Source: Parasitella parasitica NRRL 2501 | Lineage: Eukaryota > Fungi > Mucoromycota | Assembly: GCA_025201805.1 (NCBI GenBank) | Contig: MU619256.1 | Coordinates: 118,343-182,342 of the forward strand | DNA: 64,000 nt | Direction of reading: 5' to 3' | In this document: positions 987-48,279 of the stretch, one piece after another | Layout of the letters: every line of letters starts with the position of its first letter | Position numbering within the stretch: position 1 is the first letter of the stretch | Notes under the pieces: generated by a model | Databases searched by the model: none | What the model saw: only the letters and a program-made list of their open reading frames with translations | What the model was told of the DNA's origin: nothing | Made by a program: the position numbers and the translations under genes

Positions 987-3184
987 ATGTCAACGTTTGT
1001 CAGCGAACAAGTAAAGCGAATCAACGCATCACTTACGCAGTCATTTGAAAAGCACCTGGCCATCACTGCAAGCCTATCGTCGTTGGACGAGAGGGACAGA
1101 TTTTTGCTTGAAACGTCTCAAGCCATAGACTTGGGCAGTGCAAGCTTACCTTCCTTTGAAAAAGTGCAAGAGTATCTTGAAAAGTACAGCAAGCTCAAAA
1201 GCAGTCAAGATGACAATGCATTAGCAACTGCTTCTGCCGCTGATCCAGCCCTTGAATGGCTTTTTGTAGCTAAATGTGCAATTGCTATCTATGGTCAAGT
1301 GTTCTCCAAGGTGCTCAACCTGACTTTACCTATTTCCGAGTCCATTGACTATTGGAACAGCATCCAGGGGAGCACAATAAACGAATTATATTACGCAATG
1401 CAAGGTAATGAGGCTCTTCTTGTTATATAACTTGGAACGGCATGTACTGATCTTTTGGACAGTCGCACCGCATCGCATTTATTCGCTATTAAAGAATACA
1501 GTCAGCCAGATCAACACCGCATCTTCTGCTGTTGATCAAGTCAAATCACTCTTTACATCTTCCGACTATGTTTTATCTCAATTGTTCCCTATTCACGGCA
1601 GCACTGTTGGCAAGAACAAGGAGAAAAAGCAATCTCTCAAGCCCTTTAATGCGTTCAAGTTTTTCAACCTGTCTTCGTATCATCATCGTCCATTGATCCT
1701 CGAGATAATCAGCGATGAAGTTAGCCTCAAAAAGAAATCACTGCAGCAATTTCGCTCGGAACAGGCGGCCAGCTTGGGGGTTTTGCTCCTGACGCCGCCT
1801 CAGTTTAACAGCGAGGCTGATTTTGCAACTGCAACTGCAAAGGAAACCAAGAACTGCATCGAGGTGATTAAATACGTAATGGGATCATCTTTCAAGACCG
1901 CCGACAGCGATAGCAGCATCCAAAAGAACACACATCATCTGCAGCAACGGCTTAGTACGATGGACTTGAAAGGGACATCTGCAAATGATGCTACGGTAGA
2001 ATTGTACAACCTAGTGAGAAAATGGTCTTCCACTTACAATGGCAAACTGCAATGCATTCAGTCATCATACGGCATGCCGTCCTTGATGACACGCTATTGG
2101 ATCCCAGCACTAGGCTCTTACTTTGTTGGTAACATTGCCATCCGCTATGGATTCAAAAGAAAGAATGATATCATACACTGGATTGAAGAAATCGGTAAAA
2201 CGGCACACGATTTTGTGCTGAATTGGATTTGGGAGCCAGTCGTCAAAGTCTACGGGACAATAAGGCTCAAGGATCAAAGATTAAGCCTACTGAGTAAGGA
2301 GGGGCTTCAAAGCGACCTCGATGTAAGCTGTTCTGAAGCATGCGAAAAGAGCTGTCGTTGACATTTTATTCTAGTCACTAGAGCGTATGGTGGTCGGCTT
2401 TGCAAGAGACAATCTGCACATGTCAGAAAACGAATTATCTCGCCTAGCTATAGATATTCGTGAAGGCGATATGTCTGTGCTATTAAAAGAATACGAAAAG
2501 GAGATCAAGGTAAGCAGTGGATTTTCAACAAAAAGCGTTATATATATATATATATATATACTAACATTCTCTTTAGAACCCCTTGAAAAATGTTATCGTA
2601 GGTGATTTGTTGCAAACTATCCTCATTCAAGTACAAAAGACCAAAGTGGATGTCGATTTGGCCATGTCTGCATTAGACAAACTACTCAAATCAAACGAGT
2701 TGAATTTTGCCTTTTTAGGTATGTACTTTTTTTTTTAATTGACAAACACGCCTTTATTGTTCCTAATTTATATGCAGCGGTTGCACCATCAATGCTTTTG
2801 ACTTGGGCCTCTGTTTCTTGGTTTAAAAACACGATACAAGGAAGATCACAGCAAAAGATGAAAAAAACTGGCATCCCAATGAAAGAGACACTCCGTCGTA
2901 TAGAAAGACAACTGATCGTTGTAGAACCAATCCAGAACGATAAAGGAGAGCTCAATGAATGGAGTAGTAGTAACGATCAACATCAAATTGAGTGTGAAAC
3001 GCAAGGAATTCTACTGTGTGAAGTCCATTTATTGCGTGCATACGCTCGCTCGTTACCCCTTCGAAATTCAACTCGTGCACGATTTTTGGAGGATATCCGA
3101 GACTTGGAAAACCCATCGTTGACAAACGAACAAAAGATTCAAACCATTGCCCGAATGAGTAGATTTTGGAGCTTTTTAACTTGA
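987..3184 (+). CDS. NCA2: Nuclear control of ATPase protein 2 (NCA2 family, mitochondrial), 5 exons
   Basis: Spliced product contains [27 protein letters not shown]|SLERMV, YEKEIK|[51 protein letters not shown] and FLEDIRDLE; short GT-AG introns. Confidence 0.88.
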
Positions 3185-9900: not shown

Positions 9901-12697
9901 TGTATATCCACTGGATTCTTGTGTAGTCCATTTTCTGGCCAAACAGCACATCGTCTACTGAAAGCATTCATGAATATAAACAGGGCAGCCAAAGAAAATA
10001 GCAGCCAAAAAAAGACAAAAAACCCCAGGACGTTCTTGAGCATGTCGTAGCTGCTGCTAAGCGATTTCATAATGACGGTGGTGCCTTCAGTGATGACCAA
10101 AAGTCGAAGCAAGCGAACGGCAGCCAATGCTTGGAATATAGGGTATGGACGTCTGGATAGATAGAGCACCGTCAGCAGATCGATCCAGTACGATGATACT
10201 GCTATCAGATCCATAATGTTGGCAAGGCTGGAAAGGAAGCTCTTGTGAGTCACTTTGAGGAAATCAACCTCGTTTTCCTCAGCAGAGGAGGTGCGGAGAG
10301 GGTGTGGATTCAAGCTAGCAAGCACTTGCTGTTCAGCCGCGGAAAGAATAGACTTGGCGTCTTCGCTGTCTGCCTCTTCTATTCGTGTACGATGCTTTTG
10401 AGGAACTGACAAGCGAGGGCCGCTGTTATAGACTGACTCCAAATCATCCAGGCAGGATGAAGAGCAATTCCGCATAATAGTGGTATTTTCTGTCATTGCT
10501 GCCGGCGATGCTGAGCTTGAGGATGGAGGCCCGGATAGATTACTGCCTGTACCAAGACTGTGTGCCGCATATTTTGGGTAGATTCTTTCGGTGCTTGATA
10601 TGATAGAAGCATTAGCGGATGATGTGGATCTCGGTGTGTGCGCAAATGATGGTATTTGGCTTTGACGATGGTGAGATCGGATATAATTTGAGGTGGTATC
10701 GTGCTCGTCTCCATCACTATCATCTTGTGAAATCGCAGATTCAGCATCGTTTACACGAACGACGGAAAAAAAGCTAGTCTTCCTTTGGGTATCACGGATG
10801 CGCTTGAGCCATGATTGTAAACTGGGTCTCGAGTGCGAATGTGTGCTGAGAATCAAGCCATATACAATGATTTTTGAAGCCATTTCAAAGCTACAAATGG
10901 CTGATTAGTAAATATATATATATATATATATTTATATAAATTATATACAATATACTGCTCTGTGTGTTTATACTTACGTATAGATAATGTATATCAGCAA
11001 AAGCAGAAAATCACCAATCCTGCTAAAGAGCGCTGCATCTTTGTTGAACAAAACGGGCACAAATGACATTAAAATCCACTGTGTAAGCAGCAACAGTAAT
11101 ACAAGTACCTCAAACCATCTAAATACCCAAAAAAAATCAGTTGCCGTTTACATTATACATCTGATTTCAAGAGTTCCTACTGTGAACCAACGATTTTCCA
11201 GAGACAGAGCCTAGTTGGGCTTGTGGGCGAAAAAAGGAATAATGACCATCCTTCAAATCTGATTTGCGTGTTGTGCTCTTCATGGCACTGATTCTGCTGC
11301 AGACGAATGACTGGGCGACACAGATGCTTTCTGAATTTCGAAAATTTGAGCTTGAGATTTTTTAGATCATTTGACAGTGCCCTGAAATGAGGGAAGGTTT
11401 GTGGCGGCGGCGGCGGCACTAGTCTATCTGTTTCGGACGCTGTGTAATGAATTTGGCTACCCTCTGACCCTGACCTCGATATACTGGGTATACGACTAAT
11501 GGATGCAAAAGGGAAAATGTCGCCTAAACTACCAAGGTTGCGACTCTTACTGCGTTTCTGTGGTGAGCAAAGTAGAGGAGAAGTTTCATCTTGATGTTCT
11601 TCGTCTGTAACGGATAAAACAGCTTGATCTTGACCTGGATGAATGCTGTCCTCTGTTTCTTCAACAAACAGCTCGATAATGGGATGGTTTGCTGCGATGC
11701 AAGGGGTTTGCAGACCATCCTCATTTGATATATTCGTATCGTCATCTTCACTGTCGCTACTGCTGTCCTTGCTCTGTCCACTCTTCAATACATACAGATA
11801 TCGCGACAGAGAGTTCAGTTCTTCAATCGACAATTTTGTGTCTGCTGGTTCAGAGACCCTGCTATCAACTACTCGTGATGCAATAACCCCTAGTTTGTGC
11901 AAGATTGTATATATGGTGGACTGATAGTGTCTTTTCTTGTTTTTTTTTGTTCGATTGAGGGCAATGTGTGCAGCAGATAGTCGCACTAGGCCAGAAAAAC
12001 GTCGTGGTGGACCTGATGAAACTGGCTGCTGCTGGGGTGTACAATTACTAGTGTTGGAAGCACCACTTGTGTTGACAGAGCGACTATGGGTAGATTGTTT
12101 TTTTTTAGCAACTGAACCATAGGAGTGATTTCGGTTGCTATCATTGAGTGTCCTGTTTGAAGATGAAACATGAGATGCGGAAAATGCATGGCGCTGTCCA
12201 TGAAGACGGTGATGATGGTGGTGATTATGCTTGCTGTGGTTGTGCCTTGGATTTTGCCTTGAAAAGCCACGACTGAAATGTGCTCCGTACTGAGAATTGG
12301 GTGAGTTAATCGAAGCACCCGAGCTCTCCGAGCCCATCTTTTCAAACGGTGTAGCTAGTGCCATTGGCGAGTTGTCTTCATTATATACATGACGAGCAAT
12401 GTTACCATTCGATATACTCCGGCGCCTTTGAATCACCCTTACTCCTGTTGCAGGTCCGTCTGAAAGCAGCAAATCTAACCTATCTTTCTTTTCCAGCATG
12501 TCTCTTGTCAACGGCTGTGCATACTGGCCTTGGTCTTGCGGTGAAATACTGCTTTGTAAAGGGGATACAGGACTATTGCTGGAGGAATATTTTGATGGTC
12601 GCACAGACTCCTGGCTGTCAGATGTAAGAGATGTAGCAATTTGTTCACCAAATCGATAGCTATTGAGTTGACGAATGCTATTTGATGGAGAGCTCAT
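3989..12697 (-). CDS. CCH1: Four-domain Cch1/NALCN-family calcium channel alpha subunit, multi-exon
   Basis: Four 6TM repeats with pore loops ISTENW, MTGENW, ASGEGW, TTGENW. Also S6 motifs LNLFIAVIMENF and VNLFTVIVIDNF, III-IV linker SGISSLTNTQRQFQDLQRQL, and charge-poor S4 segments. Exons join in frame from ATG 12697 to stop 3989. Confidence 0.93.
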
Positions 12698-13560: not shown

Positions 13561-14745
13561 CTAAAACATCACTGTATCTTTCAGTTGGAATCGAGGTACC
13601 TTTCTGTAGTCTCCAATCTTGCCCAGCCTCCACAAATAAACATCTAAACTGCCTGTCGTCATATTATTCACAGGTCCTGCTCCACCTTGAGCGGCTTTGA
13701 CAATATCTTCACAAGCGGTGACACCTGCTGCTCTTAGTGTCGTTGCTGCTTGGACACTTAAATCAATATTGTTGTCAATATCTCTTTGCCATTCCTCAGG
13801 AATCTGAATCACACCCAGATGTGCCAACATGGTAGGGATTACGTTATCTGAGAATACAGTGAGTGAATCGATATCCTTGAAATTAAATAGATCTGGTAAT
13901 TGCTCTTTGAAAGTGTACCACAAATGATAAACGATGATTTGAGCCTTTTTATACAAGTATACAGGCTCTGGGTGTCCTGGAAATTTGTAGCTATCGTGAA
14001 GGCCAGGCAATGCCTTGATCAAATGTTCAGTGAGGCTGCGGGCGTTTTGTGGGTTTTGTCTGACATGCTGCATGATGAATTGAGCAAGGTCTTTATAGTT
14101 ATGCGCTTTCAAATATTCGCCTGTTGAGTTGAGAACGTCGGTCAATCCAGCAGCGAAAGACTTGAGAACTGTGGGCTCCGAAACAGTGACAAAGTCCAAC
14201 TTTTCATGCTTGACTTCGCGATCAATTGGGATTTGGAAAGTTTCGGCAATGTCAAAAATAGTGCAGTTCTTGAAACTTTCGGCATCCATAGGCTTTCCAC
14301 CAATATGAAAAGACATGGCACCAAAGCGAATAGTGTCAAAAGCGCTATTGTGGGTACATGGCCAAGGAAAATACACGAAACAAGCACGTTATTAACATGA
14401 ATCACATTCAAAAAAAAAAAAAAAAGACAATTCTTACCCTCTACCTGTCATTTCATGAAGAGGAACTCTATATCCACTTCCAAAATTGAGCAAATCAATC
14501 ACGGTAATAAAATTCAATTCATCCTCGATTGTCTCAAACTTGAGTGGCATCTTGATGGTAACATCATCTGAAAGTTCATTGAATTGTAGCTTGTCCAAGT
14601 TGTTTAAAAATTTATCAATTTCCTTTTGACAAATCTTTACTGGGCTTGATTCAACAAATGACCGACAGGAAGTACGGACAGATTGAATGAAATTTCCACT
14701 AGGCAATTCAGAAGCGTACGGATTTATTTCGTTGCTGCCAGACAT
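13561..14745 (-). CDS. QNG1: Queuosine salvage protein (Q_salvage/DUF2419, queuosine nucleoside glycosylase-like), 2 exons
   Basis: Motifs DLLNFGSGYR, YLYKKAQI, DIDSLTVFSDNVIPTMLAHLG, LRAAGVTACE, LDVYLWRLGK; intron joins GRG|AFDTIRFG. Confidence 0.85.
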
Positions 14746-46459: not shown

Positions 46460-48279
46460 TTAATGTTGAGCCCATTGAATAGATTTGATGTCGATGCCCT
46501 CCTGGACCATTTCCCATAAAGGAGACATTTCTCTTAATTTATCAACATGTTGAGTAACTCTCTTGATGACGAATTCAATTTCCTCGTCAGTGGTGAATCT
46601 ACCAATGCCGAAGCGGATGGAACTGTGTGCCATTTCATCGTCTGCACCCAATGCACGCAATACGTATGAGGGCTCAAGCGATGCTGAAGTACAAGCAGAG
46701 CCTGAAGACAAAGCAATGTCCTTCAATGCCATCAGCAGTGATTCACCTTCAACGTAAGCAAACGATAGGTTGACACAGCCGGGATAATTGTGTTCAGGGT
46801 CACCATTGCGATGCACTTCGTCAATCTTGGACTGGATGCCGTCAATCAAACGCTTTGAGAGCTTTGAAATTCTATCATGGTCATACTAGAAAAGACAAGT
46901 AAGTAAATTTCAAAAGATAATAATGGGAAAAAAAATCATGATCCTCAGAACCCCTGCACAATAATTCATTGTGAAAGCCTTACTATCCATCATTCGTTTG
47001 AAGGATGGACTTGGTTCACGCCTCGAAAAAATTGCTTTCATCAAGTAGCAAACCAAACGTAACTATTCACTCCCATTACAGTTTACGATGCACTTTGGCA
47101 CGATTCATCATCGGGTCATATTATACAGTATACGACATTACCTGCATTTCCTCCATAGCAATTTTACAAGCTTCACCCATACCGACTACTAAAGGATGAG
47201 GCACAGTACCACTTCTTAAGCCTCTTTCTTGACCGCCACCGCTTTGAATTGGCTCTAAACGAACTCTGGGCCGTCTGCGAACATAGATGGCACCGATACC
47301 TTTGGGTCCGTACAGCTTATGACCCGAAATGCTCATCAAATCAACATTCATGGTATTGACGTCCAAAGGAATTTTTCCAGCAGCTTGCGCAGCATCTGTA
47401 TGGAAAAATACTTTTTTTGATCTGCACAGTTTACCAATCTCTTCAATGGGTTGCATAACTCCAATCTCGTTGTTGACGGTCATGATGGAAACAATTGAAG
47501 TGTCTGGACGGATAGCCTCCTCTAATTGCTTCATATCAATGCGACCGTTGCTCTGAACAGGAAGATAAGTGACATCGAAACCCTCTTCCTGCAAGACTCT
47601 GCACGAATCCAAGACACACTTATGTTCCTAATCACCTATATTAGTAATCCTACCACCGTTTTGAATCACAAATCCAAGCTTACAATTTGGGTGGTGATGA
47701 TATGCTTCTTTTTGTTCTTGTAAAATCTAGCAACACCCTTGATACTGATGTTATTCGATTCCGTAGCACCAGAGGTGAAGAGGATTTCCTTGGGATCTGC
47801 GTTAATCATTTTGGCAACATACTTGGAAGAAAGTGTTGGTTTTTGTTTGTTTGTAATGGAGTCCGCAGTAGAAGCTTACCTCACGAGCCTTTTCGACAGC
47901 ACTCTCAGTTTCCCAGCCGTACTTGTGAGTTCTAGAGTGAGGATTACCGTATAATTCAGTCATGTAGGGAATCATTGCATCCAACACTCGAGGATCAGTG
48001 GGGCTAGTGGCTTGCATATCGAGATAAATAGGTCTGTTATAGCCGCTTACTGCCTTTGATTCAAATCCCAAAGAATCTACGCAGAGATTTCAGACATGTT
48101 GGATGCACATCAATTTGTCAAATAAAAATCTTACCAGAGCTAGGTTTTAGAGTTTCAGCTTCTTGCTGTTGCTTTGCATTCACAGAAAAGAGTCTTGTCG
48201 ATGCAGGCAATGCTGTTTTGATTGTATTTTTGGCCACAATGGGTCTAATCAATGACTTTTGAAAAATATTTCTCAACAT
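46460..48279 (-). CDS. NFS1: Mitochondrial cysteine desulfurase, 5 exons
   Basis: [50 protein letters not shown] (PLP Lys), [17 protein letters not shown] (catalytic Cys), [10 protein letters not shown]. Confidence 0.96.
46938..47119 (-). ncRNA. Intronic box C/D snoRNA, predicted U6 snRNA 2'-O-methylation guide
   Basis: Lies in a 256-nt NFS1 intron (47141-46886). Box C ATGATGA (47111-47105), box D CTGA (46948-46945), terminal stem ATGACCC/GGATCAT, and guide TTGTGCAGGGGTT antisense to U6 GGCCCCUGCACAA. Confidence 0.75.

Follow-up and report, generated by a model that had tools for sequence, protein, structure and literature searches.

A candidate box C/D snoRNA for the U6 internal stem-loop, encoded by an NFS1 intron shared among three fungal phyla

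Introduction

The gene for the cysteine desulfurase NFS1 lies on the minus strand of the 64-kb stretch of Mucorales DNA analysed here, to which we refer as the window. One of its introns extends over 256 nt, from the GT at 47141 to the AG at 46886, and is oversized, because the three remaining NFS1 introns in the window measure only 58 nt (48134-48077), 58 nt (47879-47822) and 56 nt (47683-47628). This raises the question of what the intron contains. An earlier note on this DNA had singled it out by its length, which our analysis bears out, and had proposed that it hides a box C/D guide RNA directed at the spliceosomal U6 RNA.

U6, the catalytic RNA of the spliceosome, bears a cluster of ribose methylations in its internal stem-loop (ISL), and their role is poorly understood. 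In human U6, 2'-O-methyl groups are present at A47, A53, G54, C60, C62, C63, A70 and C77 (PMC5855946), and the modification of C62 is guided by SNORD94 (PMC6894857; PMC5855946). The U6 RNA of S. pombe is methylated at C55-C57, and no candidate guide was found for C55, C56 or C57; the only proven fungal U6 guides are snoZ30 (A41) and sno530 (A64) of the same species, both established by deletion (PMC10484740). In the N. crassa catalogue, U6-Am47 is the only U6 site among the guides and there is no guide for a U6 Cm, and the fungal snoRNAome survey names in its text only the A47-equivalent site, for the snR53 family (PMC2780460, PMC5824354). In full-text searches of the literature, nothing relevant emerged on an NFS1 snoRNA and U6, on snoRNAs of Mucorales or on U6 guides in Cryptococcus.

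Host gene and anatomy of the predicted RNA

Four exon pieces on the minus strand of the window match the Pfam family Aminotran_5 in order, the exons having been compared with Pfam one by one. The exon on the 5' side of the long intron (47142-47627; PF00266, E=5.8e-46) is bounded by an acceptor AG at 47629-47628 and a donor GT at 47141-47140, and the final exon (46460-46885; PF00266, E=1.2e-08) runs to the stop codon, as given by the listing of open reading frames. The host intron itself (46886-47141) has GT..AG ends, is of phase 0 and separates the peptides ..AMEEMQ and YDHDRISK...

All elements of the predicted RNA lie on the same minus strand. Delimited by the ends of its terminal stem, the mature snoRNA would comprise about 182-184 nt (46937-47120); at some 180 nt, it would be a long member of the C/D class. 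Box C (AUGAUGA, 47105-47111) is located near the 5' end and box D (CUGA, 46945-46948) near the 3' end, the arrangement that characterizes box C/D snoRNAs, and both are enclosed by stem I, the terminal stem, whose 5' strand (47113-47120) pairs with the 3' strand (46937-46944) in the register -2:+1. Of the first seven positions all but the third, a C x A mismatch, are paired, and the eighth is a U.G pair. When a 186-nt RNA is folded, this stem appears in both the MFE and the centroid structure. Stem II of a C/D k-turn is formed by box C G6 with box D C1 and by box C A7 with the nucleotide 5' of box D, and in the window these are a G-C and an A-U pair. Boxes and terminal stem are found where the earlier note had placed them, and the distance from box D to the 3' splice site is 59 nt.

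Box D is preceded by the guide UUGUGCAGGGGUU (46949-46961). Antisense elements of box C/D snoRNAs span at least 10 nt, end 1-2 nt before box D or D' and have their target at position D+5, and the 13-nt guide conforms to this description. Upstream of the guide we find a conserved C'-like motif, AAUGAA (46965-46970), of which the UGA is invariant in seven aligned lineages (columns T156 G157 A158 in alignments A1 and A2); across lineages, an xxUGA motif of this kind is located about 4-9 nt upstream of the guide. Two other motifs, TTGATGA (47044-47038) and ATGATGG (46993-46987), had been put forward as internal C' boxes. Both are present in the window intron but are absent from even the closest orthologues, and as judged from the alignments the conserved C'-like motif is instead the xxUGA at 46970-46965, which precedes the guide by 4-5 nt. 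A conserved or convincing D' box was not found in the element or in its aligned orthologues.

The 5' domain (47056-47104) consists of AUCGUGC, a small hairpin, CGUAAA and AAUGGGAGU..GUUACG, and is conserved in the Mucorales-type lineages (alignments A1-A3). Only a 4-bp hairpin directly after box C is predicted for it, without compensatory changes, and it shows no conserved complementarity to the U2, U4, U5, U6 or U6atac of this genome by which it might serve as a second guide. At the gathering threshold of Rfam 15 no family, SNORD94 and SNORD67 included, matches the element in the window, and at E<=10 the window intron and the orthologues L016 and L020 returned noise only, with neither SNORD94 (RF00613) nor SNORD67 among it.

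Two C/D-like frames with a terminal stem of at least 6/7 pairs exist in the 64-kb window, and this is the only one with a U6-complementary 10-mer beside CUGA. In the 32.8-Mb genome, the pattern of GTGCAGGGG followed by 0-5 nt and CTGA has a single occurrence, at the NFS1 intron; the snoRNA element is single-copy, and no paralogues or other guide registers were found in the genome. Elsewhere in the window, at 12276-12293 of the plus strand, AATGTGCTCCGTA followed by CTGA is perfectly complementary, over 13 nt, to the 3' end of the genome's own U6 (UACGGAGCACAUU). This match lies antisense within a conserved kinase-like ORF (11177-12697, minus strand), with a box C-like GTGATGA near 12209, and is probably due to chance, because a terminal stem is absent.

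Pairing with U6

The U6 gene of this genome (G000:C31:28227-28341, corresponding to L001 1501-1615) scores 85 bits against RF00026. Nucleotides 56-73 of its product read GGCCCCUGCACAAGGAUG, within the wider stretch ...GCAUGGCCCCUGCACAAGGAUGACAC..., and the target sequence that the earlier note had put forward is therefore present in the U6 RNA of the very same organism. The guide pairs with nucleotides 56-68, which form the 5' strand and the loop of the ISL, and the 13 positions comprise 11 Watson-Crick and two G.U pairs. Counting upstream from box D, the guide's fifth nucleotide stands opposite C60, so that the application of the D+5 rule, which had pointed to the third C of the CCCC run, is confirmed on the organism's own U6. 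By alignment of the numbering, C60 corresponds to C62 in human and C56 in S. pombe U6. By its D+5 geometry, the target is the equivalent of the site served by SNORD94, as the earlier note had pointed out; this position alone is shared, and homology to SNORD94 is undetectable with the Rfam model.

The duplex of the guide with its own U6 has a predicted energy of -24 kcal/mol, versus -9 to -13 kcal/mol with U2, U4, U5 and U6atac, and a scan of the genome's own snRNAs revealed no other conserved complementarity to the element. A second element, CAUCCUU (47001-47007), had been proposed in the earlier note as an accessory contact to U6. It is present in the window, but it is not conserved in the orthologues, not even in the closest relatives, and is probably a chance occurrence.

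Some observations on the snRNA genes themselves may be added. The U6 gene is the sole one above the Rfam cut-off and is preceded, at a distance of about 30 nt, by a TATA-like box; the 3' domain of the RNA (..ACACUAAAUCUCUGAGAAGGAAGCUCUACGGAGCACAU(U)n) looks unlike the telestem region of human or yeast U6. A U6atac gene (L032; G000:C22:165495-165632, minus strand) was found at 64.5 bits, above the cut-off, with a guide duplex of only -11.5 kcal/mol, and given this gene the minor spliceosome seems to have been retained in this Mucorales genome.

Conservation across fungi

Relatives of the host gene were found by a word search with the upstream exon among exon-sized NFS1 ORF fragments, and the flanking DNA was then examined. 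L007, L008/L009, L013/L014, L015 and L016 all have the element in the orthologous intron of their NFS1 genes, which occupies the same exon junction. As a second route, metagenome contigs were scanned for a pattern of guide, box D and C'-like UGA. Of the six matches, two (L020 and L022) are again located in this NFS1 intron. L022 is an Agaricales contig, with a GH6 neighbour gene whose product is 82% identical to a protein of Agrocybe pediades; two GC-rich relatives of its NFS1 (L028-30 and L031) carry the element as well, and so does the annotated NFS1 of Dimargaris cristalligena (Zoopagomycota; L036). The sample thus amounts to 11 lineages, namely the window, five of Mucorales type, one unplaced fungus, Dimargaris, the Agaricales contig and its two GC-rich relatives. 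The window itself belongs to a genome of the Mucorales, as the earlier note had supposed; for a protein encoded nearby, the best match with a name comes from Mucor velutinosus, at 56%. The remaining pattern matches (L017, L018, L019 and L021) are unrelated to the element and were dismissed as chance; L018 (about 13900-14030) and L019 (about 3020-3150) contain a tandem repeat with a unit of ~50 nt (..aagttgaaaacTGTGCAGGGGTT..gtgccatg..) 3' of an ORF, unrelated to NFS1.

In the comparison of orthologous introns that the earlier note had called for, boxes, guide and a covarying terminal stem are retained in the 10 other lineages. Its view of the element as a feature of an early-diverging fungus was too narrow, as the element also occurs in Basidiomycota. 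The sequence UGUGCAGGGGU followed by (C/A)UGA is near-invariant over all 11 lineages, and the rest of the introns is unalignable. Within this block, UGUGCAGGGGUUCUGA is identical in 8 of the 11 and differs by one or two bases in the other three, the variants being UA-CUGA in L028 and L031 and UU-AUGA in Dimargaris. In every lineage the guide adjoins box D in the exact methylation register. Box C retains the core xUGA(U/C)GA in the orthologues, with GUGACGA, AUGAUGU and AUGAUUA as variants, and box D is kept in all of them except Dimargaris, where AUGA is compensated by the AUGAUUA form of box C.

The orthologous host introns range from 193 to 461 nt in the 11 lineages, and box C follows the 5' splice site at a distance of 23-53 nt. 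In all 10 lineages that permit the measurement (the L036 contig ends before this point), 54-94 nt separate box D and the 3' splice site, a distance that fits the splicing-dependent release of intronic C/D snoRNAs. As a searchable signature we propose UGUGCAGGGGUU-CUGA in the NFS1 intron that follows ..EEM(E/Q/A), or, in a form suited to whole genomes, UGUGCAGGGGUN-CUGA accompanied by box C and a terminal stem. Further lineages may be represented among the peptide entries P0004, P0007, P0016 and P0118, in which read-through from the NFS1 exon ends in ..CDESCR.., ..SDESC..TRKIIA or ..AMM-stop; translated back, such ends would fit box C (UGAUGAAUCGUGC / GAUGAUGUGA) and the CGUAAAA motif.

Covariation in the two helices

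Stem I occupies one register, from -2:+1 onward, with different sequences across the lineages. Over seven lineages, 77.6% of its cells are paired and 6 of the 7 pairs have double changes, with both sides altered. The covariation score is 0.605 for these seven lineages, versus 0.258 after shuffling (exceeded in 0 of 500 trials) and at most 0.32 for slid controls. Stem II of the k-turn shows compensation of its own: in Dimargaris, box C AUGAUUA together with box D AUGA turns the G6-C1 pair into U-A, and in L028 box C AUGAUGU together with an A before CUGA turns the A7-U pair into U-A. Pairing within stem II explains the constant U before box D, although this U only wobbles with G56 of U6. The structure is not equally well preserved everywhere. 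Stem II of L031 contains an A x A that is not compensated, L022 has a degenerate box C (AGGAUGG) and a weak terminal stem, and in these two Basidiomycota-type copies box C or the terminal stem is weak.

Alternative explanations

A genuine box C/D snoRNA might have another RNA, such as an rRNA or a tRNA sharing CCCCUGCACA, as its main target, with the match to U6 being secondary. The nuclear rDNA unit is absent from the assembly, which leaves room for an rRNA target of 10-12 nt, and the conserved 5' domain of the Mucorales-type copies, having no complementarity to snRNAs, could be a second guide. The rRNA-like sequence in the assembly is limited to pieces at C60:34650-34933 (L005), C61:68109-68718 (L003) and C243:13299-13611 (L004), all in G000; in L005, about 280 nt of nuclear-type 18S are surrounded by unrelated sequence. 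Against a different main target stands the behavior of the guide itself. Its invariant core forms 10 Watson-Crick pairs with U6, and beyond this core the sequence varies by lineage and nevertheless continues along U6 in each case, where the comparison was made with the U6 of the window genome and conservation of U6 in the other lineages was assumed. The extension AUC-A-UUGUG.. of L007 and L008 follows U6, as does AUUU-C-UGUG.. of L028, and in the Agaricales copy AUCUUUGUGCAGGGGUU pairs with U6 56-72 over 17 nt. Moreover, an exact Watson-Crick complement of the 12-nt guide exists nowhere else in the assembled genome, the assembly being one without the nuclear rDNA unit, and in human U6 a snoRNA has been documented to guide modification at this very position (PMC6894857). 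We consider a main target other than U6 to be very improbable.

The element might also act in cis, as a conserved intronic sequence that regulates the splicing or expression of NFS1 by pairing with U6 or by folding. Such a role would agree with its strict linkage to one intron of one gene over three phyla and with a complementarity to the catalytic snRNA itself. Boxes C and D, a covarying stem I and a compensated stem II are, however, the signature of a C/D RNP and not of a splicing enhancer, and the methylation register of guide and box D is kept throughout. In addition, the intron spliced at this junction is short and lacks the element in two relatives, where it measures 67 nt in L010/L011 (L010 2087-2153, L011 650-716) and 57 nt in L012 (2934-2990). 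A regulatory element acting in cis is thus very improbable. These are close relatives, with NFS1 exons that are 87-91% identical, and their introns suggest that some Mucorales-type lineages have lost or relocated the guide; the short intron of L010 still shows CUGUGAUGAAA.

A mere constellation of motifs, each of them short and without an Rfam family match, that arose by chance in a long intron has a negligible probability and is refuted by the comparative data, since 11 lineages of three phyla share a block of ~16 nt, unchanged or almost unchanged, within otherwise unalignable introns, both helices show compensatory changes and the motif occurs only once in the genome.

Discussion

As evidenced by boxes, register and covariation, the element in the NFS1 intron is very probably a functional box C/D snoRNA that guides the 2'-O-methylation of U6 at C60. 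From sequence comparison it appears to represent an ancient and so far undescribed family of fungal snoRNAs, which Mucoromycota, Zoopagomycota and Basidiomycota carry in one and the same intron of NFS1. We further lean towards the view that this family is pan-fungal and older than the split of Mucoromycota, Zoopagomycota and Dikarya, that it has remained locked in the NFS1 intron as a guide for methylation of the U6 ISL and that it is possibly an orthologue of SNORD94.

In the mechanism that we propose, the RNA would be freed from the spliced NFS1 intron through debranching and exonucleolytic trimming. The trimming would come to a halt at the core RNP of Snu13, Nop56, Nop58 and fibrillarin/Nop1, assembled on the k-turn of box C, box D and the terminal stem. 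Thereafter the ribose of C60 would be methylated by fibrillarin, presumably during the nucleolar passage of U6, a Pol III transcript.

Both the kind of molecule and its mechanism are already well known. What the locus offers is a concrete, canonical candidate guide for a cytosine of the CCCC run, with a signature that can be searched for in any fungal genome, and a guide for ISL methylation is the very class that is missing for C55-C57 of S. pombe U6. The linkage of snoRNA and host has been kept across three phyla, and the host, NFS1, is related neither to ribosome biogenesis nor to splicing.

The known fungal U6 guides resemble the present RNA to different degrees. The CD11/snR53 family of N. 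crassa likewise consists of intronic, widely conserved C/D RNAs with a predicted U6 target, but it addresses the A47 equivalent via a D' guide and also serves as an rRNA guide (PMC2780460, PMC5824354). S. pombe snoZ30 (mgU6-47) and sno530 are fungal box C/D guides for U6 as well, and differ in that their targets, A41 and A64, lie outside the CCCC run (PMC10484740). In addition, sno530 departs from the canonical architecture, to which the RNA described here conforms in its terminal boxes and stem. Among vertebrate guides, the human SNORD94 is hosted by PTCD3 and not by NFS1. SNORD67 (MBII-166/HBII-166) is a C/D guide for a neighboring cytosine of the ISL, U6 C60 in the human numbering (PMC5855946), with a register shifted by two nucleotides and no Rfam match to the element described here. 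SNORD94 (RF00613) has no detectable similarity to the present RNA in sequence or covariance model (cmscan, E<=10), but it is the closest in function, an intron-encoded box C/D guide for the same U6 nucleotide (PMC6894857). The two thus share the guided position, and the defining features of a box C/D guide appear to be present in the fungal RNA, while homology is not demonstrable from the sequences; if they should prove to be orthologues, the guide for U6 C62 would date back to the ancestor of the opisthokonts.
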